DNA of 63,205 bases, the filler included, from Pelomyxa schiedti (taxonomy: Eukaryota > Protista > Evosea), in assembly GCA_020536535.1 (NCBI GenBank). It is 6 parts of 6 records of this genome, joined end to end, with 100 filler letters (N's around TTAATTAATTAA, not from the genome) between each part and the next. Parts side by side here need not be neighbours in the genome. Positions count along the whole stretch, not along the records: positions 1 to 18,469 come from JAHLWZ010001117.1; 5 more parts are not named here. One strand, given 5' to 3'. Positions 1 to 18,469 of the stretch are shown one piece after another. The position numbers and the translations under genes are program-made. Within the stretch, counting starts at the first letter, position 1; the number at the start of each line of letters is the position of its first letter. The notes beneath the pieces are model-generated. The model worked only from the letters and a program-made list of their open reading frames with translations, did not search any database and was not told the DNA's origin.

Positions 1-69
1 ACGGTCCAAGTAACAGCTTCTTGTTATCTGTTGTTAATTTCTTTTATCCACAACAATGTAGTACACCCA

Positions 70-2423
70 TCAGTGGGGGTCGTCTGTTGACACAGTGAAT
101 TCACAGCCTCCTTGTTTCTCTGACTGAGCCACACTGTGGTAGGTAGGTTGGTCTAGGCAAGGAGCCCCCGCCACATGAACTGGGGGTAAAAGCACTGCAT
201 TCAGCATAGCCACTTTATCACTCAGCGTAGTTTTGGTGTTGTATGCCTTACTATGGATGTGAGTGGTTGTTTGGGACTTATGGACATTTTGGAGGTGAAT
301 TTTGAGAGAGACAATGGCGGAGTAACGTGACGCATAGTTGCTCCAACCACGCCTGTTGTAGGTTGTGCAAAGTGGGCATGTGTACGGTTCGTCCTTCTCG
401 GTTGGCACAAGGGCTTTGGCTGTCTCATATGCTGCTGTTGTATTTTTCGCTGTTGCCTGTGGGCTGATTGGCAGTTTACACTCAGTGGAAGCAGAGTTGC
501 AACGTGCAAGAGGAACGCCGTTGGCATTACATGTCTGTGGCAAGGTGAGAGAATAGCAGAAAGTAGGAACAAATAAATACGCACATTGCCAAGCAGTGTT
601 GATGGTGAAGCACACCCATCCCAACCTTGTTGTTTTCCGGCTGAAGACTGATTTTTGTCGGCTTGCTTGCTTGAGTTCCCCATCTCTGACTGTGGCCCGT
701 CTGCCTCGGGTGATAGAAACATTCCAGTTCCGGGTCTCAGCGCCGCTTTCTCTTTCGAGAGTGGGTCTCCTTCACATTCGGAGCTGTAATAATCTGTGTC
801 ATTTTCTGTTGGCGTGCTCGTTGATTTTGCTTGCAGAGGTTGCTGGTTTTGGCGAGAGCTGCGTTTGCGCTTCTGCGCCGATTTTTGCTGAAATGGTGGA
901 ATGCTACTTCTGTGTACGTCCGCATAGCTTTCGCTGTGTTGGTGTTGGAGGTGGCAGTACAAGCTGGTGAAAGCATTCTTTCTTGATGCATACTCTGACC
1001 AGCCGGACTTTTTGTAGTTTGTGCACAGTGGGCATTTGTAAGGTATATTGCTTTCGAATGGAACAACAGCCTTGGCTTTCTCGTACAGGAGATGATTTGA
1101 CTCGCCTTGATAAGGAATGAAATTTCACCAAAGCAAAAAAAGGGATCATACTCTTCCTCTGGTCATCGTTTTCCTGTGATCCAATGGTGCTTGGTATTTT
1201 GCTCTTGTTATCTTGAATGTAGGCTTGGTTGTTGAATGGTTCCAAAGGGTTGATGTCTACTTCGACATTGTGATCCATGGTGGTCTCAGGCTGTTATTAT
1301 AATTCTCGTTAGACAGTCAAAAATTGATCCCTACTCACCTTTGGGGTTCGTGAGGACGTGACACACTGCAGGGCAGTCGGTGTTGATTGTAATTGATTGC
1401 TTGGAGCAGTTGGGTTCAGAGGGCATTCGTACGGTGTGTTCTTCTCTCTTGGCACAGTATCTCCCCATGTCGTTTCTGAGGGTGAGCATTTGTTGGGTGC
1501 ATCATGCGTTATTCTTGTTCGTGTGTTGGTTGCCATTTCCTCATCTTCAGATTCAGATTCGGTTTCGGTTTCAGAGGTTGTTGTCTCACTGTACAAACTG
1601 TCGTCTGAGTAATATGAGGAATCTGATTCTAATACTGTCACAGGGTGTCTGCGTTTATGAGCCTGTCCGCATTTGCGATGCTGAGAGGACTTGGGTTCAA
1701 ACGGAGGAATGTGACTCCTGCACATGTCCTCGTCTTTGTCAGTGTGCGTTTTGAGGTGGCGGAACAAATTCATAATGGCATGTCCCCTTGATGGGAACCC
1801 TGACCAACCTGGCTTGTTATGACCGTGTGTGCACATCGGGCATTTGTACGGTGTGTGACACTCCACAGGCACTACCGCATTGGCTCTCTCCCACGTGAGG
1901 TTATTCCGTACTCCCCCTGTGAATAACAGTCAATAAGAATGAATGAAACCAACGTAAATACCATTGCTCTTTGCGTTATAATCACATTTCGTGGCGTGAG
2001 TGCTACTGCTGATGGTGCTGTGTTCACGTGTTGTGTGAGCGTGCATGGACATGTGAATACGCAGATACCGGACCGCGCTACNNNNNNNNNNNNNNNNNNN
2101 NNNNNNNNNNNNNNNNNNNNNNNNNNNNNNNNNNNNNNNNNNNNNNNNNNNNNNNNNNNNNNNNNNNNNNNNNNNNNNNNNCCATTGCTCTTTGCGTTAT
2201 AATCACATTTCGTGGCGTGAGTGCTACTGCTGATGGTGCTGTGTTCACGTGTTGTGTGAGCGTGCATGGACATGTGAATACGCAGATACCGGACCGCGCT
2301 ACTTTTGGAGTCGTAGTTGCACCACCCATATGGCCGGCTGTATTGTTCAGTGCAGATCGGGCACTCGTACGGCTCTTCGGGGTTGTCGGGTATGATAGTC
2401 GTGGCAACGCTACGCTTTCCCAT
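70..2423 (-). CDS. Long-spacer C2H2 zinc-finger array gene A (4 intact + 1 truncated fingers, spliced; 3' end approximate)
   Basis: Fingers CPICTEQYSRPYGW...LRIHMSMH, CPMCTHGHNKPGW...LFRHLKTH, truncated PYECPLN, CPLCTNYKKSGW...LYCHLQHQH and CPLCTTYNRRGW...LKIHLQNVH. GT-AG intron about 1962-1918. Spans a 100-N gap with duplicated flanks. Could be two genes. Confidence 0.72.
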
Positions 2424-2733
2424 CTTCCGATGTGTGTTTACAGCGATGGCTTTAAAAGGGGAAAAAACACAGCCAAGATCTACGGATCGATGTTACGTTA
2501 CGCGCAGGGTGTGTAACAGCATTTCATCAGGAAAATCAGACTTTCTGAGAAAGCTCGTCTGATTTCCCGCGTATGAACGGATCAAAATACTTACAGCAAC
2601 ATAATAAAACCCAACACAAACGTGGAAGAGGCGTTCACCACCACAGTGTTTGGTTCTGTATCTCTATTTTGCATAGAAATTAATTGTAATAGATGATAGG
2701 AGAAATCTTTTTTTTTTGTTGTTCCCTTTACAG

Positions 2734-4409
2734 TTAGATGAGGGTGAGTGAGGTCAGTGCCCTACCGGCAGTTGTGGTTGCGACTCAAACAGTTCCACTT
2801 TCACCTCCCACTCTCGAGTGCAACCATTATGGCCATTGTGGAAACTGTCAGGCCAAGACACGTGCACTGGTCCTAGGAAGGGTATTTGGGTTTTGTAGTT
2901 ACGTGCATTTTTACACTGTACACTAAGAAGTAAATACTTTTGGAATCACTGCTTCCAGTGCTTGTTGGTGTTTTTGGTTGCGGTTCTGGCATAATATAAT
3001 TATGTTTATATTTGGTCCGTGGGGAAAGAAAAAGGGAGAATCACATCAGTCCTGATTCCTGGGCATTGGTCGGTTAGACAGACTGAAGATAGTAATTGCA
3101 TGAATACCTTAGGTGATTGCAAGGAGGAAAGGACACACTGTGTAGCACTTGTGTTAATTGCTTCGTTGTGGTGTTATCGTCACGCTGATTTGCTGGGAGT
3201 TCGGTGTCTAGATTTTGTGACGAAGTCAAGGTGTGTGTACATGCAAGTTGCGTTTCATGTTTCGGTTCCTTTCTGATTGTATTCACATGCTCAGCTTCCC
3301 TATGACAACAGCAGCAGGGGCAACACATCCGCTGATACAAGATATCTATATCCTGCTCTCTGACTGCTCCGTTTTGATGTTGGGTCAGATTATTTGGGTG
3401 GCAATGCGGGGTACCCTGCATGCAAAATGGAACCACACCCTCTGTATAAACTGGGGGGGCCATCAGGTACCCTCCCAGCCTCTCCACTTTCTCACTCAGG
3501 GAAGCTTGCCTTCGCCCACGGCGACGATGAGTGCTGGTGTGGGCCTGGAGGTGGGTTTTTAAGTGTACGTGGAGACTGTTTATAGCGGAGAAGCGTGATA
3601 CGAAGTGCGTCCACCCAGGCCTGGAGTAGTTTGTGCACAGTGGGCATGCATAAGCTATGTTCCCATGTCTTGGTACAATCGTACCTGCCGTAAACTTACG
3701 AGGCCTTGTGGTGGGCAATTCACCCTCATCTGACTCAGAGTCGCAGGGTGCAAGTGCCATTATCTGCGGCTCGGCTTTTATAGGACTGGGGCTTGAGGTT
3801 GTCTCTTCTTGTTCATAGTCGGAGCTGGAATCAGAATCGCCTTCCATTGTTGGACTGTGTGTTGAATTCAAATGCGTTTGTTGTTGACTGCGGCCGTGCT
3901 TGTTCTTCGGAGGGAGTTTGGGTGGAATTTGGCTTCTATTCATGTGTTCAACATCATCACCGTGATTTTGAAGGTGATGGAACAAGTTGGTGATGGCATG
4001 ATGCCTCGAAGGGCACTCTGACCATCCCGATTTGTGATAATCTTCGCACATCGGGCATTTGAATGGCGTTTGCTCCTTGATTGGGACTATCGCCTTGGCT
4101 CTCTCCCACGTCGGATTAACGGGTGCCCCTTTTAGTAATATGAGATGAGAATTTCGAGTACGAAAGAATGGCAAACATACACATCTTCTTTGTCACATTG
4201 GTTTGTGTGTGAGAGCTTCTCTCCGTGTCATTCTGGGCGTGGCGTTTCAGATGTGCCTCCAAAAAATGTACAGCACGGTCTCGCGAGTCGTAGTATTGCC
4301 ACCCACTTCTCTTGAAACTCGAGCAAATAGGACAGTTGAAAGGCTCGTCGGCTACGGTTGGCACAACAGACTGCGACAATGCGTTCAGCCTACTCAGATC
4401 TTCTTCCAT
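2734..4409 (-). CDS. Zinc-finger array gene B (3 fingers; 3' end approximate)
   Basis: ORFs 4116-4409 and 3074-4174 joined by a short GT-AG intron (~4179-4132). Fingers CPICSSFKRSGW...HLKRH, CPMCEDYHKSGW...HLQNH and CPLCTNYSRPGW...HLKTH. Confidence 0.75.
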
Positions 4410-4430
4410 TTCTTTCCCGTATGCCTTTCT

Positions 4431-4466
4431 TTTCGAAGATCTGACGCACGTTTAAACGTGACATGC
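4431..4466 (-). promoter_or_regulatory. Conserved upstream motif of zinc-finger genes (gene B copy)
   Basis: + strand TTTCGAAGATCTGACGCACGTTTAAACGTGACATGC, 22-57 nt upstream of the ATG; recurs upstream of genes E and H. Confidence 0.55.
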
Positions 4467-4560
4467 TTGCCGGGCGATGCTGCGGAATTTTGATTTTTTG
4501 ATGACAAGAAAGAGCCGATTTTAAATCTTTCTGCGTAGTGAATGAATCTATTCCTCAGTG

Positions 4561-7500
4561 TCAGACTTGACGAACGCGAGGTGGTCGAGGCAGTTCGGAA
4601 TTTAGTTGTTGTCTGACAGCAGTGCGGTTGGTTCTGATGGTTGCCTTTTGGTATGTTGGTGATGGAGGTACTTCATGGTCACTTGTTGGCTGTGGTGGAT
4701 TGGTGTAACACATCTGATTGGGCTCGGTCTGTCAGTCCCTCAGTGTTAGTTTTTTCACAAGGTGAAACCAATGAATTCCATACCTTTGGAGCCGCCGGAG
4801 AGGAGAGAACAAGAATTTGATCGTTTGGAGAAGTGTTCCCCCCGTGTGGAACGTGTTTCAGTGCCGAGAGTTCTGTGTCGACTTGTCGATAAAGCTCTGG
4901 TAATTTAGTGCGGCCTTCTGGAGTCGGGGGAAAATTGTCTGCATCTACATTTGTTTCATCTCGACGCTATAGTAACAGAAAAGGCACCAGTATTGTAAGT
5001 AAAGAAAAACCAAAAACACATACATTATTAACATCACCAGTGGAGGGCAATGCCATCAGCCCATTTTGTCTCAGTTTCATTTGGGAGTTATCGTTGTGGC
5101 TCTCACACTGTGTTGTGTTTCTAGGAACAGGGACAAACATGATGTTTGCAAAGGTCGTATCCTTCTCCGTAGTTGCGGGTGTCTCAGAATTTGCCAACAC
5201 TGAATTCGGCTCGGAATCTGGATTCATATCATACTCAGACTCAGAGGCAGCAGAGTTCTCCATGTCAGGCTGTGCCTGTGCAGGGAGAACCAACATTGTC
5301 GATCGAGGCCCTGTTACTTTTACAAGTGTTGTTTCATTGTGAGAACTGGAATCTGAGTCGTTAGAGCCAGAATTTGACTCGTAAGAGCTCTCCGGAGTGA
5401 AATTTGGGAATGGTACACTTTGCAGTGCCTGTGAGCTGCTGGATACCAACATTGTCGTTCGAGGAGGTCCTGTCACTTTTACCTCAAGCGTTGGTGTTTC
5501 ATGGTGAGAACTGCAATCAGAGCTTTCACCCTTCCTCTGTGTATCACATTCCGGGGCTGTCGGGCATCTCTGCGTGATGTGTTTCTTTCCAATGTGGGGA
5601 TCCAAATGGCTGCTCAGAGAAGAGATTGCACTGTATGTGGACTCGTGGCAGTATTTTCCACTGTGCTGTTGACAAGAAAGGACTTTGTCATTTGTTGACG
5701 GGTTGGATGGCGGTTCATCCGCATTACCTTTGCCAGCTTTGCGGCTCTAAGCATAGTATTGTTAGGAGTGTCAAGAGTGAAGTGGAGTGAAAATCGAAGT
5801 AAAATGTACATACATTAGCAGGAAGCTGTGAGGAAGAGCCAACGCATGCTGGGCGTATTGCATCTACCAGGCCTGCTAGTGTGTCCTTAGCCGCAGTCTC
5901 GTTGTCACCACAGTAGGAGCCTAACTGAGCCATAATAGGGCTATAGTGCGGCTCCTGTTGTGTCCTATGGGAGAGGCTGAAGTGCAACTGGAGACGGTAA
6001 ACTGCAAGTTTGCGAGTTCCGTATTGATTCCACCCAGGTATTGTGTAATCTGTGCACAGTGGGCATTCATAGGGTGTGTCTTTCTCTGTTGGTACAATAT
6101 CTTCGGAGCTTCCAGAGATCATAAGTGTTCTACCGGGCACACTAAGGGGTGAATTTCCTCCCGGTGCTACAATTTCCAAATTGTTTTCTCTTTCGGACTC
6201 GTAGTTACAGGATTTGCCACTTCCAATCTGATCCTGTTGTATAGAGGTCTCTGCCTCTGGTAACATTTGAGCTCTAAGACTCATCAGTTCCCCCTCCCAG
6301 GGTGTCCCATGATCTGGGCTGGAGTCTGCGTCGTAAGATACGGAATCGGCGGACTGAAAAAAAATCAGACATAGACTAAATAAAATGTAAAATACCTTAG
6401 GAGATGGAAAGGGAGGAACATATTGTGTAACACTTTGTGTTGATTGTAATTGTTTTATATCAAGAATCTTCAGATTTCTGGACGCGCTTTTATTACTCTG
6501 TTGTATTGGGGGTATGATATCCGGGTGTCATATAAGAAAGGGCATACCACTGGCGGTGCTCCCTCCTGCTGGTTTGTAGATGCACTCGCAATCTCAGCAA
6601 CTCTATGGCTATTGTAGCTCATATTGTGATACATAATATCTACAGTATTCTTTCCGAGTGGTCTGCCCTGGAGTTGGGCAAGTTTATCCTCCTGATAGTC
6701 GGTATTGAGTGTGACAGTCCCTGTCCCATTGGGCGGGACCTTTAGCACGGCTCTTAGCATGGCAACTTCATCACTCAGTGTCGTTTGGGTGTTGTAAGTG
6801 TGATTGTGTGCCTTGCTTAGATGATGTTCCAAGTGCCTACGGAGGCTGAGAACGGCACTCTGGCGAGATACAAAGTGGCTCCACCCGAGCTTGGTGTATG
6901 TTGTGCACAGTGGGCAGGTGTAAGGTTTTTCCATCTCCCTTGGAACAATGGCTTTGGCTGTATCATATACGGTTGTATTAGTTACGGTTGACTGTGAGGG
7001 TTCTCTTGGCAATTCGCCCTCGTCTGATGCAGCGGCACTCTGTGGCATGCCGTTGGCATTACTTGTCTGTGGCAAGGTGTGAGAATACTGGAAAGTATTG
7101 CGAAACTAACACGAACCCGAAAATTGCTGCGTGATGATGGAGAAGCATATCTATCCCCACCCTCCCGTGTTGTGGTCAATTGGTGAGACTGAGTACATTG
7201 AGCAATCTCTGTCTCGGTTCCTAACATTACAGGTGTCTCTATTTCATGTTCGGAGCCAAATTCATGGTCTTCTCCCACCGGTGTGCGTGCGCAATTCATC
7301 ACAGGCATTTGTTGTTGGTGTTGATGATGATAATTGCGATTGCGCTTCTGCGCCGATCCAGGCGGAAACGGTGGAATTTGACTTCTGTGTGTGTCTTCAC
7401 CATCTTCGTTGTGGCGCTGGAGGTGCCGGAACAAGTTTGCTACGGCGTTCAGCCTTGACTTGAAACACTGAGACCAGCCGGACTTGTTATAGCTCCTGCA

Positions 7501-7858
7501 AAGCCGGCATTTGTAGGGAGTGTACCCACCGTTTGGAACAATCTCCTTGGCTCGTGCCCACGCGATACGGCTCGGTCGCCCTTTATCAGAAGAAAGTGAT
7601 TACAGGACACACGAAGTTGGTTAACTCACAGTAGACAGCTACTCTGGGTGTCTGGTCGTTTTTTTCTTGCGAGCAAAGGAGAAGGGTGGCCCCGTTGGCC
7701 TTTCGCGTGTGGTGGTCCAAGTGTAGGTAGATAGCATGGACAGCATTGTATCTGGTAGCGTAGTACTCCCAGCCAGGCCTCTCGTAATTTGTGCAAGTTG
7801 GACACTTGTATGGCACCTCTGGGTTTGCTGGTACGACTGACTCGGCCCAAGACCACAT
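4561..7858 (-). CDS. Zinc-finger array gene C (4 fingers, long Ser/acidic tail ending SELPRPPRVRQV*)
   Basis: Fingers in ORF 7586-7858, at ~7560-7420 (CRLCRSYNKSGW...LFRHLQRH), and in ORFs 6470-7075 and 5724-6284. C-terminal peptide shared with gene G. Confidence 0.7.
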
Positions 7859-8321
7859 CGTCGTGGTATTTTCCCCTTAATTCTTGGGTGAGGATCGGGC
7901 CGCAATCTCGTCCTTGTCGTAGTAGAACCCAACCGTTGTTGGCCTCTTGATTATATTTCGTGAATAACTTTGTGACCATAAAAAGGGCAGATTTTGATCA
8001 TTAGTCTAAAGTGAGATGGTGATAAAACAAACTCTTAGATTAAGCAGTCCTGGACAAGTGTGATGTGGAATTGTTTGTAGCACGCCTATCTACAAACAGC
8101 CTGGTTGTTTTGTGGTTCATTTGGTCTGAAGATTACTTCAACCTTTGGATCCGTGGCACTGGTCTTTTGGCACATAATGGCATTGTTAGAAGTTCAACGG
8201 ATGTAAACTGTTGATGTAGACTGGACTGTATTATCCGGATCCGCTTATGTGGTTGAGGAGGATTGAGTTCCGGCTGTTTTGCATTGTCTGTTGGGCTGGC
8301 ACTCGTCGTTGGTGTTGATGG

Positions 8322-8790
8322 CAACCGAGTATCGAGGTCAAACTCAACCCAATGTAGTGTTCTCTCCCAATTGCTAGGGAATTGCTTCTTGGCAAAGTAC
8401 TTATCAGATCCGTTTTACTGCATGAACTGTGATTTCAGCGGCTTCATTGCTTTGCGGTTCATAAGCAATGACGGTTACTTTCTGTATTCCCCAAGCGCGG
8501 TAGAATTCGGCATTCAGTTCACTGATGAATGACTTGTCTCGATCGCTAAGAAGGTTCGTTGGACATTCTTGAGTACGAATCCATGTCTTTTGTCTATTGT
8601 TCGCAGTACAGTTGGTACTTCTCGATTCTTCAATGCTTTCAACCTCACCAATCTTGAGTGTAGATCGACCATGAGCAGCACACATGTGTCTGTCTGAGGG
8701 TACTGGTGGGAAGAAGAAATCCATAGTTACCTATTCTCCTGGGAAGGGTGCTATGAGATTCTTTGGTTCAAAGGATGGCTTGTAGCTTTG
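8322..8790 (-). mobile_element. Frameshifted retroviral-type (rve/DDE) integrase core relic (Ty3/Gypsy or Ginger/TDD-like)
   Basis: Reading across frameshifts: APFPGE*VTMDFFFP / CVLLMVDLHSRLVRLKALKNREVPTVLRTI / WIRTQECPTNLLSDRDKSFISEL...WGIQKVTVIAYEPQSNEAAEITVHAVK / NWERTLHWVEFDLDT. This matches the D..D(35)E layout and the YxPQSNG motif of integrases. Confidence 0.85.
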
Positions 8791-9401
8791 AATTGCGTCA
8801 AATCAAAGTTCAGTAATAAGTGAATAGGTTTTATTTTTGTATTATAATCGTGCTGTGGGTTTTTGTTGTGCCTGTGACGTACCCTTGTTGTGGATTGAAT
8901 CTATTGTTTGGGAGCAGTGGTGTTCAGCCAGAATTCTGGCACAACTTCTTTTTTTTCTGAGCATTTGNNNNNNNNNNNNNNNNNNNNNNNNNNNNNNNNN
9001 NNNNNNNNNNNNNNNNNNNNNNNNNNNNNNNNNNNNNNNNNNNNNNNNNNNNNNNNNNNNNNNNNNNATCGTGCTGTGGGTTTTTGTTGTGCCTGTGACG
9101 TACCCTTGTTGTGGATTGAATCTATTGTTTGGGAGCAGTGGTGTTCAGCCAGAATTCTGGCACAACTTCTTTTTTTTCTGAGCATTTGATTCTCGTCTCC
9201 AATATATATTCACAACCCCCTTCCAAAGAGTGAAACGCTCAGCCCTGATGAGCGTGATCTGATCGAGGCCCTTCAGAATCGTGGACCGGTTGTATGCCGG
9301 CACTGTTTGCCTTTAGGTCCGGTTCCTGTGTTGGGTTGGCTACTTGTATCTTTTGGTAGATGCTGCAACTTGTCTATTTAATACCGTAAAAACAAATGGG
9401 A

Positions 9402-10751
9402 TCAAAGGCATACCGTGGGGGCGGTTTCTGGGTTGATATATCTGCGCACCAATTTCCGTTTGTGTGGTTGATGAGGAGGCTTCAGCTCCAAATTCACCTG
9501 TTTTATGTTGTCTGTTGAACCACCTTTGCTGCTCTGTTTAAATTGTAGAGAGGGAAGGAGCGAGGAAAAACCAAAATGCACGTCTACATTAGCGCGACGC
9601 TGTGAAGAAGAGGGAGCACATACCGCAGATACATTCATATCCTCCGTATCTTCACAGCAGTAGTACTTTGTTTGGGCACTGTGATTGTGTGTGATCGCGG
9701 GGTGTCTTCCAAGGTGCTTGTGGAGACCATTAACGGCACGCTCGCGAGACATGTAATATTTCCATCCAGGCCTTCTGTAATTTGGGCACAGTGGGCACGC
9801 ATAGGGTGCACCCATCTTCCTTGGTACAATGGTGTTAGCTCTCCTCCATGTAGAAGCTGTGGGTTGGAATCTTCCGGGCACATTGTGAGACACATTGCTT
9901 TCAGGGGCATTTGTTGTCAATTTGGTTTCCTCTTCGGACTCGGAGTCAGGTTCAGAGTCACAGGATTCACTGAGTTCAGGACTTTCAGTTGGATCAGGTT
10001 CCAATGAGCTCTCTGTCTCTGGTACTGACATTCGAGCTTTGAGCCGCATAACTTTCTTCTTCAACAATGGTGTTGTTGCCTCATAATCCGAGCTGGGGTC
10101 TGAGTCATCGGAACCGGATTCTGATTCCTCCTGAGTCCTTGAATACCTCGATTTACAAGCCCGTTTGTGTCTCTGTGGTTGACAACGGCTGCGTTTGCAT
10201 TTCTTAGGTGAGGATTTGAGTGGAAAAGGATGGATGTGACTTCTGCCCGCGTCCGCGTAGTGAAGTGAAAGGATGTGGTGGAACAACCCCGTGGTGGCGT
10301 TATTCCTCGATGAGTACTGTGACCAGCCGGAATGCCTGTTATAGTTTGTGCATAGCGGACATTTGTATGGTTTACGACACTGTAACGGTACAATGGTCTT
10401 GGCTCTCTCCCACGCCATGTGACTTGGTTGCCCTTTTGATTTAAGAAATGAAAGACGTGGGGCATGCGTACCCACACCTTCCTCCTCCGTGTGCGTGTCA
10501 TCGCATTTACGTTCATTTACGGCGGTGTCGCTTCCATTGTGATGAGATCGGCGTATCTCAATCTTTCCGTCTTCTCCGTGCCAGATGTGGTTATCGTACA
10601 CATGCTCTGTCATACAATTGACCGCCCGATCTCTTGTCTCTTGGCCTCGCCACCCCGCGTTCTTGTTCTTTGAGCAAAATGGGCACTCGTATGGCACATC
10701 AGGGTCATTGGGAACAATAGAGGCTGCAACTTTCCATGCCAACACCAACAT
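9402..10751 (-). CDS. Zinc-finger array gene D (3 fingers; tail may extend toward ~8130)
   Basis: ORF 9402-10754 with CPFCSKNKNAGW...EHVYDNH, CPLCTNYNRHSGW...HHILSLH and CPLCPNYRRPGW...HKHLGRH, plus basic and acidic linkers. Confidence 0.75.
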   Translation of the reverse strand: MLVLAWKVAASIVPNDPDVPYECPFCSKNKNAGWRGQETRDRAVNCMTEHVYDNHIWHGEDGKIEIRRSHHNGSDTAVNERKCDDTHTEEEGVGTHAPRLSFLKSKGQPSHMAWERAKTIVPLQCRKPYKCPLCTNYNRHSGWSQYSSRNNATTGLFHHILSLHYADAGRSHIHPFPLKSSPKKCKRSRCQPQRHKRACKSRYSRTQEESESGSDDSDPSSDYEATTPLLKKKVMRLKARMSVPETESSLEPDPTESPELSESCDSEPDSESEEETKLTTNAPESNVSHNVPGRFQPTASTWRRANTIVPRKMGAPYACPLCPNYRRPGWKYYMSRERAVNGLHKHLGRHPAITHNHSAQTKYYCCEDTEDMNVSAVCAPSSSQRRANVDVHFGFSSLLPSLQFKQSSKGGSTDNIKQVNLELKPPHQPHKRKLVRRYINPETAPTVCL

Positions 10752-10814
10752 CACCTTGTGACAGAGATGAAGATCTCGTAGTACACTCTGGGGTTTGTTA
10801 TTGTTTATGTGAGG

Positions 10815-12328
10815 TTATGTTTTTGTCGGGCAAACAAAAAATGACACATTGCATACAGCCAAATTATTTACATTATAAGTCCTTATGACGATGAGATGGA
10901 GATGACTGAGGTAGTTCAGGTCTGTGGAACGTCTACCACTGATGTAATTTCGTGGGTAGCTGGTGTTTTGGTGCCTATTGCGGCAGAACAAAATGTTAGG
11001 TTGGCCAAATAGAGAGGTGTGTACCTTGGGTGATTGCGAGGAAGTGTCCCTAGAATGCATCTGTGTTGGGAGAGCTAAGGGAGCACATGACAGTGATGGT
11101 TCATCCTTTTGCTTCTCGGGTGTACTGGCATTGTCAGCTTCATTATGGCCACATAAACAGCAGCTGCTGCTACTGCAAGCCCTCATGTGCTGATACAAGA
11201 TATCTACAGCCTCTCTTACTGAAACGTTCTGATGTTCTTGCTTCTTCGGGCAGTAATGTGTGCCACTCTGCAAGCAACCAGGGGCAGCACCCTCTGTATA
11301 AACTGGGGCTGTCAGAGCTGCTGTGAGCATCACCAATTTGTCACTGAGTGTAGTGGGGGTGCTGTGGTCGTGGTGGTGATTGTGATTGTGACTGCGAGTG
11401 GACGCCTTGGTATGTCGCGTATGGCTTAGAAGGTGTACGTTGAGACTGGATATGGCGCAGCTGCGGGATACAAAGTGATTCCACCCGGGCCTGTTGTAAT
11501 TTGTGCAAAGTGGGCATCTGTAAGGTTCGTCCCCCCGCCTTGGTACAATGTAGTTAGCTGAAGTACGCGGAGTCCTTGGTGTGGCTGCCAATTCACCTTC
11601 ACTCGATTCAGAGTCGCAGGGTCCGGGTGATATCTGTGGGGAGGTGAGAATACTGGAAAGGTGGAGCAAACGACGCACATTCTCTCCCTGTGCTTGTGTC
11701 TCTGCTTCAGATGTCATGGAGCTCGAGGTTTGTGTATTTTCTTGTTCATAGTCCGAGCTGGAATCAGAGTCGTCTTCCGTTGGTGGGTTCGGTGTTCGTT
11801 GTTGACTGCAGCTCCGCTTGTTTTTCTGAGGGTGTTTGGGTGGAATGTCACTTCTGTCTGGCCCCTCGCCATTTTCGCGATGGTTCTGGAGGTGACGGAA
11901 TAAGTTGGTGATGGCATTAGCCCGTGATGGGCACTCTGATGACCAGCCCGACTTGTTATAGCTTGAGCAAAGCGGACATTTGTACGGCGTGTGCCCGTCT
12001 GTTGGGACACTCTCTTCGGCTCTCTCCCACATTATACTCTTGGGTGCCCCTTTCATTAGTATGAGTTAGATGATAGTATTTCGAGCGTAAAGAAGAAGAG
12101 ATCTGAAATACCCGTCCTCTCTGTGGCATCGGTTTCTTGTCTACGAGAGTATCTGTCCGTGTAATTCGGCGTGTGCTTGTTCAAGTGTACCTGCAAAAAC
12201 CGGACAGCACGGTCTCGCGAGTCGTAGTATTGCCACCCACTTCTACGGAAGCGTTTACAGATCGGACAATTGAAAGGCTCATCGCTGCTGCTTGGCACAA
12301 TCGACTTGGCACACGAGCATGAACTCAT
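10815..12328 (-). CDS. Zinc-finger array gene E (3 fingers; closest to gene B; 3' end approximate)
   Basis: ORFs 12056-12328 and 10815-12056 joined by a GT-AG intron. First finger shares GWQYYDSRDRAV with gene B. Confidence 0.77.
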
Positions 12329-12370
12329 CCCCCTTTATTCAAGTGTCTGTTTCTTCCCGTGTATGGATCG

Positions 12371-12409
12371 TCAGATCTGACGCGGTTAAACGTGACACGC
12401 AGGGAAACG
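12371..12409 (-). promoter_or_regulatory. Conserved upstream motif (gene E copy)
   Basis: TCAGATCTGACGCGGTTAAACGTGACACGCAGGGAAACG. Confidence 0.55.
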
Positions 12410-12654
12410 GGTGTCATTCCAAAAAAATCGAAGGGGTGTTGACACAAAACAAAGTTGGTGCAAGAAAAACCGACAATGACGAAAATTACAGTGTTCCGGT
12501 CCTTTGATTATTTTATTCACCAGCCAGTTCACCTTTCTTCTCTGTCCCACGATCAACACTTGTATTCCTTCAAAAGGCCAGTACCACTGTTGGTGGGTTG
12601 GTGTGCAAAGTGCCTGGGTGATTCGAGAAAAAGACATGTTACATTCACACGGTG

Positions 12655-14093
12655 TCAAGTCCACAGACCTGACGGGCGTGAGGAGGTCGAGGGAGTTCGG
12701 AATTGTGGGTTGGTTGAATGCTGGCACTTTCGGCCTGTGATGGATTCACAGCCTGGTTGCTTTGTGGTTCCATTGGTTCGGGGACAACTTCAACCTTGAT
12801 ATCAACCGTGGTACTGGCCTTTGAAGGAATACAATGTTAGGAAGTCTAAAAAGGGGCCAAAATGTACCTTGGGAGCTTCTTGAGTGGACCTGGTGGCTTG
12901 GAATTGTGTTACTGCCATTCTGCCTTGAGGGTGTTGGTTCAGTGCGGAGACATTTCCGCACCCATTTCCGTTTGCGTGGTTGACGACAAGTGAGTTCCGG
13001 CTGTTTTGTATTGTCTATTGGGCTGCTGATAGCCGTTGGGTTTGATGGTACTATGCCCGAATTAATTTTGATGTTGCCGTTCTATGTCAGTATTATGAGT
13101 GTAAAAAAGTGATGTATACATTGACGGGAAGCTGTGAAGAAGAGGGAGGATATGCCAGCGGCTGTTTTGCGGGTGTATTCACATGCGCAGCCTCCTTTGC
13201 TTGAGCCTTATTGTCATGTCTCCAGAGGTGCTGGCGTAGAGATTCTATGGCGCCTTTGCGAGATGCAAACTGGCGCCAGCCAGGCCTTTTGTAATATGTG
13301 CATAGAGGGCATGCATAGAGTACATCCTTCTCCATTGGTACAATGGCTTGGGCTCTTCCCCGTGCAGTGATTGTGGGTGAGAGCACAGGCGTATCAATTT
13401 TCAGTTGTCAGCATCTTCGGACTCTGTCTCGGACTCGGACTCAGACTCAGACTCAGACTCTGAGCTAGGGTCACAGGGTTCACTGCTTTCAGTTTGATGC
13501 TGTTGTGTTGAGTCTGGTGCAGGCATGCGAGCTCTGAGCCTCATCACTTTCTTCTTCAACAATGGTGTTGTTGCCTCGTAATCCGAGCTGGAGTCCGAGT
13601 CGCTGGAACTGGATTCTGGTTCCTCTTAAGTCATGGAACTCTGACCAGCTGGAAAGTTTATAAATCTTGCACGAGGGGCACTTGTATGTCGTTCGGCGTT
13701 CAATTGGGACAATTGTCTTTGCTGTCACCCACGGGAGGTGATTTTGTGGCCCTATTTCGGTCGAGAGAGTTAGCGCCACCGCGTGAGAAAAATACTAATA
13801 CTATCAACACACAACACACCGTCCGTATGTTCGACGACATCGCGATGTTTAGGCACGTTGTTCCTTGCGTGGCAACTGGTCGCTTGTCTCGCTTTCCAGG
13901 GCCTGGCTGAGTGTGGCAGCAGAACAAGTGTCTTCTCAACGAATGACTGATGGAACTTCCAACCACTCCTCTTGTAGTTCGAGGTTTTCCTCATTGACCC
14001 TGAAACAAACTGAACACAATACCATGAAATTGGAACGGGAGCTACGTTGACGAAGATCACAGCCCCACAAAAGACGTTGGTACTCGGCACCAA
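12655..14093 (-). pseudogene. Degenerate zinc-finger array gene F (1 intact, 2 damaged fingers; related to gene D)
   Basis: Finger 1 has lost its CxxC (…NYKRSGWKFHQS). Finger 2 is cut after CPSCKIYKLSSWSEF and jumps into the gene-D-like acidic linker with frame disruption. Finger 3 CPLCTYYKRPGW...RQHLWRH is intact. Confidence 0.6.
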
Positions 14094-14252
14094 CGTGGGA
14101 TTTTTTTTACTTGGTTGTTTGGCGAAAGATGCTGACCTTGAGCACTATTTTTAGAAAAGTCTCAACAAATACTTGCAAGGACTTGTTGAACGCAATGACA
14201 CTCTTTGTCTTCACATGAAGAACTCGTTTTACAGAGATTATTTTGTATTGTC

Positions 14253-15659
14253 TCAGACCTGACGAACGTGAGGAGGTCGAGGCAGTTCGGAATTCAGTCT
14301 CGCTGTTGGGGAAGTTGTTATCTTTTGGTGTTGCGGTGATGGAACCACCTGAGGATTGCTGTGTATCATCACCTGGGGTATATCGGTAAAACAGAATGGA
14401 AGGATAGGGCACACCTTGGGCACCTGCAAGGAGGGTGGTGCACACTGGGCCACGCTTACCGGTGCTGATTGTAATCTATGACTGGGAGCGGTGTTCATAG
14501 GAACTGTGTCAAGGGGAGGACATTGTTGTTCGAGCTGTTGGCAAGCTTTGAGCTCCGGGCATTTGATGACGTTGGCTGGGTCAAGGGGGGGCATTGTTGT
14601 TTGGGCTGTTGACATTTGGTGTTGTTTAGTGCTCTGTGTAAATATAACGAGTGTAAAGAGTGAGTAAAACCAAAATGCACATACATCGGCCGGAAGCCTC
14701 ATAGAATTCTCAGGCTCCTTGTTGCAACAACACTGACAATTTCCCCTCAGGTGCTGATACAAGGTTGTAGCGCGCTCTCTGAGTGATCCGTTATGCTGTT
14801 GGGTTCCCTGCAAACAACGTGGCACAACGCCAACTGCGTAAGCTGGAGCCATCAGCACCGCTCTGATCATTGCTACTTTGTCACTGAGTATCGCTTGGGA
14901 GTTCCGGCTGTGACAGAGAGGAGTATTGGTATTAGGTACGGTCGACTGTGGGTATCCCTCTGCATGATAAGTGCTTGTGGTTGACAATTGTCCCGAATCT
15001 AACTGCGAAAAGGTAACAATACTATAAGGTTGGAGGAAAATAAACGCGTGTATCTCCTTTATATTTGGAGCTGGAATGTACGTGGCTCTCCCGTGGCGTG
15101 CTCCCCTTTTGATAACCGCTTCGTATGTGCTTCAGTGGAATGTGACTTTTGTGGATATCTTCATCACCGTGGTGTTGCAAGTGCTGGAACAAGTCGGAGA
15201 CGGCGTGCCCTCTTGATGGGAACTGTGACCAGCCAGGCGTTTTATAGTTTTTACACAGCGGGCATTTGAAAGGAGTATGGCACTCCATTGGTACAATCGC
15301 CTGGGCTCTGTCCCACACAAGATGGTTCGTTTCCCCTTTACGATAATTGAGCAAACACATTCATTGAGAATAACGGGGAGCAAGAAGTGATGTGACAAAG
15401 AAAAAAAAAAAGTGAGTGGAGATATGGGGCACATACAGAGCCTCTGGGGATCTTTTTCACACGCGCAAAGGCTCAATCCGGCTCCCCCAGTTTTTTCCAC
15501 GTGGTTGTTCAAGTGAGAATGCAAGGAATGGACTGCTCCATCTCTTGAACTGTAATAATCCCAGCCGCTCCTCTTGAAATTTGAGCAGATCGGACACTCG
15601 TAAGACACCCCACTGTTTGTAGGAACAACCAACTTGGCCCACGCCCACGTCGTGCTCAT
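14253..15659 (-). CDS. Zinc-finger array gene G (2 fingers; ends SELPRPPHVRQV*)
   Basis: CPICSNFKRSGW...HSHLNNH and CPLCKNYKTPGW...FQHLQHH. The LSDKVAMIRAVL motif is kept although the third finger is missing. Confidence 0.7.
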
Positions 15660-16108
15660 CCTCGCCTCGCTCAAGTTTGCACAACGTGTCAGTTTTGTTC
15701 CTTATTTTCCTGCAATACAGGAAGTAAATAGGCTATTGACACGCAGGCAAGCCGTAGTCGTCATTCAGCGCCCACTAAAAAAATTTGTTTAAAAACTGAA
15801 AATGTGTTTAAAAATGAAAAGACCAAGTCAGCTTTCTTGTTTGCCTGGAGTAGCTAGCAGTGTAAGTGGCACGCATAAAGTTAGTCCCTTTGGGACGATG
15901 TGGGAGAACCTTTGAGTCAGTTTCTTGAGAATTTGATGTTTTGAGTGCTGGTTATATCAACCAAGTTTTTCTTTTCTTTTCAGTATCCTTAGAAATATGT
16001 TCTGAGGTGCGGTGCTAGGTGCGGGCTTGTGTTGGGGAATGCTTTTTTGGAGTTATGTGGCACTTTACAGTGAAGGGGACTGTACCCCTGACTGAGCGGC
16101 ACTAGGGT

Positions 16109-18330
16109 TCAAGTACCCTGGAGGCCACATGTAGCTGGAGTCATCCCAGCTCTGAGAATTGCTACTTTATCACACAGTGTTGACTGGGGGAGGCAACTGC
16201 GAATGGAGTGGAATTGGTGGAGATGTCTTTGTAAGTGGTAGTTGAGACTGACTATGGCCGATTGGCGTGATACAAAGTTGCTCCACCCAGGCCTGGTGTA
16301 CTTTGTGCACAGTGGGCATGTGTAAGGTTCGTCCCTTTGCCTTGGCACAACACCTTTGGCTATCTCGGCTGTTATGTGCGCAGTTCCTATTACGGCCGGG
16401 ACTTGGTTTCCTTCCGCACTGTCATTTGACTCAGAGTTGCAGGGTGCAAGTTGCCTTCTGTCGACAAGATATGTCTGTAAAAAAGGTGAGAACACCAAGT
16501 GGAAGGAAAACAAACAGACGCACATGAACATTGCCTAGCAGTGTTGATGATGTAGCAGCACCTTGTTGTGTTGTTGTGGTGGTAAATTGGGGAGACCGAG
16601 TCTGTTGAGCCAAGTCCTTGTCAATTTGATGTGTTGAGTGACCCGTCCCTTCTGGTGTCCCTGTCTCGGGTAATTCCAACACTCCCGCTCCTAGCCTCAT
16701 TGCTTTGTCCTCCTTCAAGGTTATCTCTCCTTCAGAAGTGTTGGAGCTGGGATTACATGTGGTGTTCGTTGATTTCAAATGTGTGGGTTGCTGTTGTCGA
16801 CGAGAGCGGCGTTTGTGCTTCTGCTCCGGCTTCGACGGAAAGGGTGGAATCTTACTTCTGTGGACATTGTCACTGTGATGTTTGAGGTGATGGAACAGGT
16901 CGGTGACGGCCTGCTTTCTTGACGGGAACTCTGACCAGCCAGACCTCATGTCATAGTCTGAGCACATTGTGCATTTGTATGGTGTATGACACTCAATTGG
17001 AACAATCTCCTTGGCCCACCCCCATACCCGACGATTCAATCGCCCTTTTTGAGAGATTTGAAAAGGAAAAAGTGATCATATTATCATACCCTCACTCTGT
17101 GTGTAGTCACCTTTCTGCGGTAAACTGCTTGGTGTTTTGCCCTTGTAGCCTTGTTTGCCGAATGGTTCAAGCAGCTTGCCGGCAACTTCAGCCTGGTGAT
17201 CAATGGTATCGATCTAGTTTCGGAAAACCTCTCGTTAGAATTTAAAGACAAATGGGCTCAAGGGCAGGAACCTTTGGGGCTTGTGAGGGCAGGGCACACT
17301 GTGTGGCGCTCGGCGTTGATTGGGCTTGGGATGGGTTGTTTGGGGCAATTGGGTCCTGTTCAGAGAGCTGTGCTCTGAGCTGCACCACTTTATCACCCAA
17401 CTTCGTTTGAGGACTTAATATGTTGCCTGTTGCGGTTACGGTCTCGTCTTGGTGGTGGGAATGGAAGTGCCCCTGGAGGGCCGTTATGGCATGTCTGCGA
17501 GATGTGTACTGGTTCCACCCGGTCCTCTCAAATTCTAAACATAGAGGGCATGCATATGGTGTAGTCTCCTTTCTTGGTACGATGGCTTTGGCTCTCAGCC
17601 GTTCTGTTGTTGCAGGGGAGTCTCCCTCCAGTGCGTTGTGGTGTGTATATCTTGTTATTATGCGTGCATCATCTTCAGAGTCAGGCTCACAGGTTATTAT
17701 TGTCTCATCACTGGAGCTGGAGCACGACCCGTCGCAACTGGGCTCGGATTTGTTCGCTGTTACGAAATGGCTGGATTTCCGGGCACGTCTGCATTTGTGG
17801 TTCTGAGGAGATTTGGGCTGAATGTGACTTTTGTGTGTGTTCTCATCTTTTTCACTATGGCGGTAGTGTAAGTGGCTGTACAAGCTAGTGGTGGCATGTG
17901 TTCTTGATGGAAACGCTGCCCAGCCCGACTTGACATATGTTTCACACAGTGGGCATTTGTATGGCGTATGAGGCTCGATTGGTACGATGGCCTCGGCTCT
18001 CTCCCGCATTGATTGATGATTCGGTCCTTCATCAATACAAGAAGAGTAATAACAATAAATCAGACGTGTAGGAGTGAGAAAGCCAAGCATACCCTTCATG
18101 TGTGCGTCATCACATTCCGTCACTTTGTACATTTTGTGTGCGCGAGGGCGGTGCTGTAATCTCTTATCCTGCGGTGTGTGGCGGCAGAAATGCAGGGACA
18201 AGGCGCGTATTGCGTGGCATCTGTCCTCGAAGAAGAGGCGCCACCCTGGCCTGTCGTATGTTTTGCATATGGGACACTCGTACGGCTCATCGGGATTTTC
18301 TGGTATAATCGCTGCCGCTCTCGTTTCCAT
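16109..18330 (-). CDS. Zinc-finger array gene H (5 fingers; parallels gene A; 3' end approximate)
   Basis: ORFs 17242-18330 (3 fingers), 16431-17039 (1) and 16109-16531 (1). Could be two genes. Confidence 0.72.
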
Positions 18331-18410
18331 TCCTTAAATGCGTGAGCGATAAGAAAAGATCTCACGTAACAACCTCCCTCTTCGTATTCGGGTTTTGTGT
18401 ACTGCTGTCA

Positions 18411-18455
18411 TTTCGAAGATCTAACGCGCTGTTAAACGCGACACGCAGGGAAACG
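18411..18455 (-). promoter_or_regulatory. Conserved upstream motif (gene H copy)
   Basis: TTTCGAAGATCTAACGCGCTGTTAAACGCGACACGCAGGGAAACG. Confidence 0.55.
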
Positions 18456-18469
18456 ACGTTGCCAATCGT

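Follow-up and report, generated by a model that had tools for sequence, protein, structure and literature searches.

A tandem array of genes for a long-spacer C2H2-like zinc finger in the archamoeba Pelomyxa schiedti

The window analyzed here is a stretch of 63,205 nucleotides (nt) of Pelomyxa schiedti (GCA_020536535.1), filler included, with 6 parts of 6 records joined end to end. Its positions 1 to 18,469 (JAHLWZ010001117.1, the array contig of 18,469 nt) carry a tandem array of genes built from a C2H2-like zinc finger with a long spacer. The genome searched has 52,367,397 bases in 5,337 contigs, the published assembly being of 52.4 Mb in 5,337 scaffolds, generated by SPAdes with a largest k-mer of 121 (PMC8887013), and the array contig is nuclear DNA of this intron-rich archamoeba. 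Six-frame translation of the array contig revealed 25 intact fingers between 271 and 18330, all on the minus strand, while the same pattern had a mean of 0.08 and a maximum of 1 across 50 codon shuffles. Eight minus-strand genes (G1 to G8) were drawn, one of them a pseudogene, with inferred borders except where RNA shows them. A previous sequence-only reading had proposed about 25 intact copies in about 8 same-strand genes, and both numbers are confirmed.

The consensus given by that reading, W-x-x-A-x-x-IVP-x5-PY-x-CP-x-C ... GW ... SR-x2-A ... L-x2-H-x3-H, also stands. The invariant residues in the array are P, C, C, G, W, A and the first H, and conservation reaches at least 90% for V, P, R, L and the last H. 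Over the whole family, both Cys and the first His are invariant (51 of 51 fingers), the last ligand is His in 45 and Cys in about 6 of 52, the upstream Trp is present in 22 of 51, and the Ala three residues after it in 46 of 51. The spacer between the second Cys and the first His has 23-24 amino acids in 43 of 52 family fingers, as previously claimed. The fingers were rightly described as dispersed and devoid of TGEKP linkers, since they are at least 50 residues apart, and the reported basic tracts are seen after most fingers of class B (defined below), followed by Ser/acidic tracts. After a B finger comes a short S-x-IPP motif, then in most cases a basic tract, and then the Ser/acidic sequence.

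A DNA tree sorts the fingers by gene position into classes A, B and C (support 90, 90 and 88), and an intron acceptor is readable at the same place ahead of nearly every B finger. All genes lie on the minus strand. G4 (10932-12328) and G7 (3107-4409) have the layout A-B-C followed by a decayed fourth finger, D. In G4 the fingers are at 12161-12328, 11871-12038 and 11409-11576, and the gene overlaps the NCBI model Pelo_16370; in its paralogue G7, the 3' part of which is Pelo_16368, they are at 4227-4394, 3950-4117 and 3539-3706. The longer layout A-B-C-B-C is found in G1 (16109-18330) and G8 (70-2423). G1 contains A at 18169-18330, B at 17848-18015, C at 17443-17610, a linker exon, a second B at 16866-17033, a second C at 16211-16378 and the start of a decayed D; its splice signals and the parallel layout of G8 suggest that the two halves form one gene. 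G8 contains A at 2256-2423, B at 1735-1902, a truncated middle finger at 1417-1458, B at 927-1094, C at 271-438 and the start of D. In G6 (4561-7864), A (7697-7864), B (7402-7569), C (6809-6976) and a decayed D are followed by an extra C-class finger (5958-6125), a helix remnant (5591-5650) and the C-terminal motif (4561-4602), and its 3' part is Pelo_16369. G5 (9270-10754, the 3' end being approximate) has A at 10578-10745, B at 10254-10421 and C at 9690-9857. G2 (14253-15659) keeps A (15489-15656) and B (15157-15324), has lost C, and ends with a decayed D and the C-terminal PRPPH motif with the stop codon (14253-14294). G3 (12660-14090) has a frameshifted A (~13944-14090), a B with the second half deleted (13630-13740) and an intact C-class finger (13204-13371). 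It is paralogous to G5, the two being 85% identical across 126 nt, and still contains the C-terminal motif, with a stop codon that reads TGT; G3 is a probable pseudogene.

The two damaged fingers of G3, the truncated finger at 1417-1458, which ends after the first Cys, and the helix-only remnant at 5591-5650 (weak, E 0.04) are truly damaged copies. Damage had been proposed for 3 copies; it is real, with four cases found, although the partial copy at 2035-2079 is an assembly artefact (see below).

In many genes the reading frame closes with (N)SE-x-PRP[PQ]H-x-RQ-x-stop. As a search pattern this motif has 8 genome matches, 7 of which end finger genes, against 1 match for the control. The motif is also present at the end of a short finger-free contig (L040, G000:C2288:1607-1636), where it is probably the 3' end of another member. 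The decayed D, located after C, has lost the Cys pair (~14720-14891, 11150-11351, 6560-6781 and 3300-3500); in several genes the D segments keep both helices and a terminal Cys cluster, and they align with a fourth finger that is intact in dispersed members on contigs C795 and C2123 (L015:6491-6664, L020:182-355). When C was modeled together with decayed D, AlphaFold predicted only two helices, both of low confidence, in D, which perhaps was repurposed. Upstream of the genes, the DNA motif GCGTGTCACGTTTAA...AGATCT is found on the minus strand at 18415-18451 (G1), 12366-12405 (G4) and 4440-4471 (G7), about 75-120 nt ahead of their starts, and in weaker form before G8 (~2470-2510) and G2 (~15720-15750). 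With one mismatch allowed, its 15-mer occurs 6 times in the genome, 3 of these inside the array, against 8 for the control; it is a candidate shared promoter element or autoregulatory site.

The duplication unit is the whole gene, in tandem. An ancestral gene A-B-C(-D) with the short C-terminal motif was duplicated whole, the copies then losing, gaining or breaking fingers. The birth-and-death evolution formerly proposed agrees with the pseudogene G3, the transposon-broken fingers and the tandem duplication of whole genes. On the other hand, "rapidly expanding" was an overstatement, as identities between paralogous fingers of one class are just 35-70%, and omega does not significantly exceed 1 at any site.

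Both N gaps of the array contig are 121-nt scaffold overlaps, since exact 121-nt duplicates flank each of them and 121 is the top SPAdes k-mer. The first (1961-2181, no strand) combines a duplicated 121 nt with 100 N, 1961-2081 being identical to 2182-2302; when the N and the duplicate are taken out, fingers A and B are back in order with a GT..AG intron between them, and the partial finger at 2035-2079 is therefore an artefact. The second (8847-9067, no strand) has the same composition, is intergenic, and repeats 8847-8967 at 9068-9188; continuity across it is inferred from the exact overlap. Contig C3144 offers an alternative path at the first gap, with the same two 121-nt ends and ~90% identity between them, and is probably an allele of this region.

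The family amounts to 57-58 matches on 11 contigs in each of two profile searches, a lower bound, two of these contigs being allele bubbles (C3144 and C3227). The array very likely extends into contig C1432, because in run X2 a contig end with the last 14 bases of the array contig continues into 16 letters found at C1432:124-139; the 8 letters preceding them are identical to the last 8 of the array contig. C1432 contains 9 further intact fingers in the same orientation, which would bring the array to ~25 kb and ~34 intact fingers in all. Elsewhere, the end of C2123 and the start of C1174 overlap by 121 nt, so that their finger genes form a second small cluster that adjoins a large kinase-like gene, C3227 being an alternative path of the C1174 start. 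The frames beside the dispersed members look, by eye, like host genes (actin-like, ubiquitin-conjugating, kinase and others of this sort), and no transposase-like frame was noticed among these neighbors.

We compared the finger with known types using hhalign, a pairwise test and not a library search, with controls in which the ligands were kept and the other columns shuffled. Against classical C2H2 fingers the probability was 94-97% and the score 31-42, with the hairpin and the His helix aligned across a 12-residue gap, while the controls reached at most 18 and the BED fingers of this same genome 11.6 (probability 1%). The finger thus reads as a classical C2H2 probably enlarged by an insertion and an N-terminal helix, outside both PF00096 and BED. 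It was previously considered not assignable to a known family, but it can be placed as an insertion derivative of classical C2H2. From the latter (PF00096) it keeps the Cys-x2-4-Cys and His-x3-5-His ligands, the hairpin PY-x-C-x2-C-x2-[YF] with its aromatic residue, and the helix end L-x2-H-x3-H. It differs in the spacer (12 in the classical F-x5-L-x2-H, 23-24 here), in the gain of an 11-12-residue insertion, GW-x2-[YF]-x-SR-x2-A, with invariant GW, and of the N-terminal segment W-x2-A-x2-IVP, in a predicted extra N-terminal helix, in the lack of TGEKP linkers, in scores below the Pfam cut-off, and in some copies ending in Cys. The insertion is predicted to lengthen the helix, and the classical -1/2/3/6 recognition code is inapplicable, as the residue at -1 falls within this lengthened helix and is always Ala. 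AlphaFold predicts a compact unit of ~55-56 residues, in which an N-terminal helix precedes a short hairpin and a helix of 17 residues (predicted local distance difference test, pLDDT, 92; predicted template modeling score 0.75). In a fold search the best Z was 4.2, to unrelated folds, with SWI5 finger 1 at 2.9.

The BED signature, Cx2CxnHx3-5[H/C] (PMC3365051), is not specific, and the Pelomyxa finger fits it. It shares with BED (PF02892) a variable long spacer, H or C as the last ligand, an upstream Trp (~40% of copies) and the stand-alone condition. However, it lacks W-x2-F, has a conserved Ala where BED has Phe, gives no HMM (hidden Markov model), profile or fold match to BED, and is not accompanied by a hAT transposase. 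Matches to zf-BED occur at 9 places in the genome, none on the array contig, which agrees, together with the hhalign result, with the earlier exclusion of BED. Weak neighbors are the long-spacer C2H2 families with a Trp, namely Rua1_C (PF14616), the TTF-type zf-C17orf113 (PF25431) and zf-Di19, in which an aromatic residue likewise separates the Cys pair from the His helix; all fall below threshold. The PF14616 and PF25431 HMMs have no match in the P. schiedti genome at E up to 1, the control for PF25431 giving no signal either; an origin from Rua1 was considered and, as PF14616 is without a genome match, is not supported.

Searching 1.84 billion representatives with HMMER and the family HMM, we found 18 proteins. 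Eleven of them carry the long-spacer finger, ten being from P. schiedti and the eleventh (P0010) mapping to the array contig. In the other 7 only 12-26 profile positions were aligned, summed over many fingers, and the one that we examined has classical fingers joined by TGEKP linkers. In word searches, which reach 0.55-1.75 times the query length, the finger alignment and Pelo_11858 as queries returned nothing or only Pelo_11858 itself, and a metagenome scan with one finger had no match. The lineage specificity suggested by the sequence-only reading is therefore upheld as far as these searches reach: full-length kin were seen in P. schiedti only, and the family seems provisionally to be Pelomyxa-specific, the presence of other archamoebae in the libraries being unchecked. 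Pfam searches of 10 window frames, 5 annotated models and the fingers gave nothing above the cut-off, including KRAB, ZAD, SCAN and BTB in the frames and models. The best PF00096 match to the fingers is below the cut-off (E 0.068, one member of 25), and PF00096 has no match on the array contig. A PDB sequence search was not significant (best E 0.02, partial), and an Atlas feature search gave scores of at most 0.90 to unnamed or weak C2H2 clusters. A strong full-length match to an existing family, which would have spoken against the earlier reading, was thus not found in Pfam or PDB. No paper on the family was found, and the subtype is undescribed in the libraries and papers searched, without a Pfam model, its proteins being named 'hypothetical protein'. 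In the genome, classical PF00096 fingers have 5 matches at E up to 0.01 against the 57-58 of the long-spacer family, both being lower bounds.

A codon model was applied to 51 fingers with a fixed topology from the DNA tree, the high synonymous divergence making site values rough. Omega is 0.40 for the fingers, with a likelihood-ratio statistic of 247 against neutrality. It is near 0 at the ligands, Pro, Trp, Ala, Gly and Arg (ligands, P, W and A invariant, Arg in 49 of 51) and ~0.8-1.0 at exposed helix positions, and no site among these fingers is significantly above 1. The pattern shows a functional domain whose surface positions are tolerant, and no arms race.

RNA contigs from two runs of one sample were compared over 9401-15390 (G2 to G5). 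Their coverage is of 9401-10129 in G5, where a 90-nt GT..AG intron (9534-9623) is skipped in both runs; one has a further join near 9414, and the exons were joined to check the reading frame. G5 is thus transcribed and spliced, so the lack of transcription that would have spoken against the earlier reading was not observed. Between run X2 and the assembly, the G5 open frame (9627-10641) has 12 differences, 5 silent and 7 amino-acid-changing, one of the latter inside a finger, indicating high allelic variation.

A long terminal repeat (LTR) retrotransposon integrase fragment, a passenger outside the finger family, lies between G5 and G6 (8328-8796, minus strand). It has 85% identity with elements on C1462 and C66; the element on C1462 contains an open pol frame of 1,540 codons for reverse transcriptase, RNase H and integrase. 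On C1432, one finger is split by an 89-bp element resembling a miniature inverted-repeat transposable element (MITE; L013:4827-4915, G000:C1432). The terminal inverted repeats of this element are 12 bp long, and its target duplication is the 4-bp AAAT. It has 411 genome candidates, and the best are 96-100% identical, indicating recent activity; an older partial copy is at 12471-12519. The finger does not appear to be a transposase domain: neither transposase nor integrase domains were found in the family proteins (10 window frames and 5 annotated models), and no inverted repeat of note was seen on the array contig.

We lean, with modest confidence, to the interpretation that these proteins are host nuclear regulators binding nucleic acids, probably DNA, through stand-alone fingers, with a constant C-terminal motif that recruits a partner. 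This is because the C2H2 profile match, the pLDDT of 92, the tree, the omega of 0.40, the finger charge (mean net +3.2), the basic tracts behind B fingers, the C-terminal motif, the G5 transcript and the host-gene neighbors all point in this direction; no clear transmembrane-like stretch was found in 7 annotated models (top 19-residue hydropathy 1.66). The proteins would be nuclear, and each finger would bind zinc and act by itself on a nucleic acid, most likely DNA. A constant surface for backbone contacts or packing could be formed by the near-invariant Ser-Arg at the helix start, the basic residue that precedes GW and the Trp, and the target would be chosen by those helix positions that are exposed and variable. 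A shared partner would be recruited by the disordered Ser/acidic tracts together with the C-terminal PRPPHxRQ motif, and the proteins would have a role similar to that of transcription or chromatin regulators. Several points weigh against this interpretation. G2, G3 and G4 are without an RNA contig within 9401-15390, although such contigs show presence and not absence. An omega near 1 at exposed positions is as compatible with relaxed constraint as with a changing specificity. No clear match came from Foldseek (PDB and viral), VIA-align and Atlas shape searches, a result of little weight in either direction for a unit of ~56 residues. RNA or proteins are frequent ligands of isolated C2H2-like fingers, and the main rival, possible but distinctly less probable, is that the same host family acts as an adaptor or scaffold on RNA or protein partners and not on specific DNA sites. 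The wide spacing by disordered tracts without TGEKP linkers, the invariant Ala at position -1, the interaction surface that the extra helix and the invariant Trp could make, and the RNA- and protein-binding fingers among the sub-threshold Pfam neighbors would be explained by it, whereas the basic charge, the near-invariant Arg at the helix start, the tracts resembling nuclear localization signals, and a duplication-and-loss pattern typical of transcription-factor clusters favor DNA.

Silencing of transposons convergent on KRAB zinc-finger (ZNF) proteins, with variable fingers reading mobile elements and the C-terminal motif recruiting a common repressor, seems unlikely. It would account for the combination of a constant family-specific motif with variable fingers, the genome does harbor the young 89-bp MITE and LTR elements, and in animals the ZNF number tracks retroelements (PMC10547256). 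But no site has omega significantly above 1, there are just ~20 genes with 1-5 fingers each, the copies are old, and the transposons in the array show insertion only, not targeting. A transposon DNA-binding domain of BED or TTF type, spread or domesticated from a transposase, is largely refuted and retains very little probability: the formal fit to the BED signature with an upstream Trp, the ~6 of 52 fingers ending in Cys and a weak Pfam match to zf-C17orf113 (E 0.056) are outweighed by the absence of zf-BED from the array contig, the 1% hhalign probability, the lack of transposase domains and terminal repeats, and the conserved intron positions. PF25431 and DUF4371 also gave no match, though their controls gave no signal either. 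To an assembly artefact or non-functional repeat we give practically no credence. The two N gaps, the allele bubbles and the genes without RNA contigs, which are the majority, could raise this doubt, but the copies are only 60-80% alike, two runs cover the 6 kb of 9401-15390 at 95-99+%, and the strong purifying selection (omega 0.40) and the spliced transcript refute it.

These genes add an undescribed subtype to the zinc fingers, although lineage-specific C2H2 variants are not rare among eukaryotes. Should single fingers recognize specific DNA by way of the lengthened helix, each would represent a small module for reading DNA that is new. We consider it doubtful that the family is an amoebozoan convergent equivalent of KRAB-ZNF proteins, in which an enlarged single-module finger with its own code and a repressor-recruiting C-terminal motif would counter transposons or provide Pelomyxa with its main lineage-specific class of transcription factors. 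Compared with the KRAB-, ZAD- and FiNZ-ZNF clusters of animals, the Pelomyxa genes, ~20 in number, have few, dispersed and non-classical fingers without detected positive selection, and their constant segment is a 13-residue C-terminal motif instead of an N-terminal domain. Nevertheless, they share with those clusters the lineage-restricted tandem arrangement, birth and death, and variable fingers joined to a constant short segment, so that a pattern best known from animals is found in an anaerobic amoeba.

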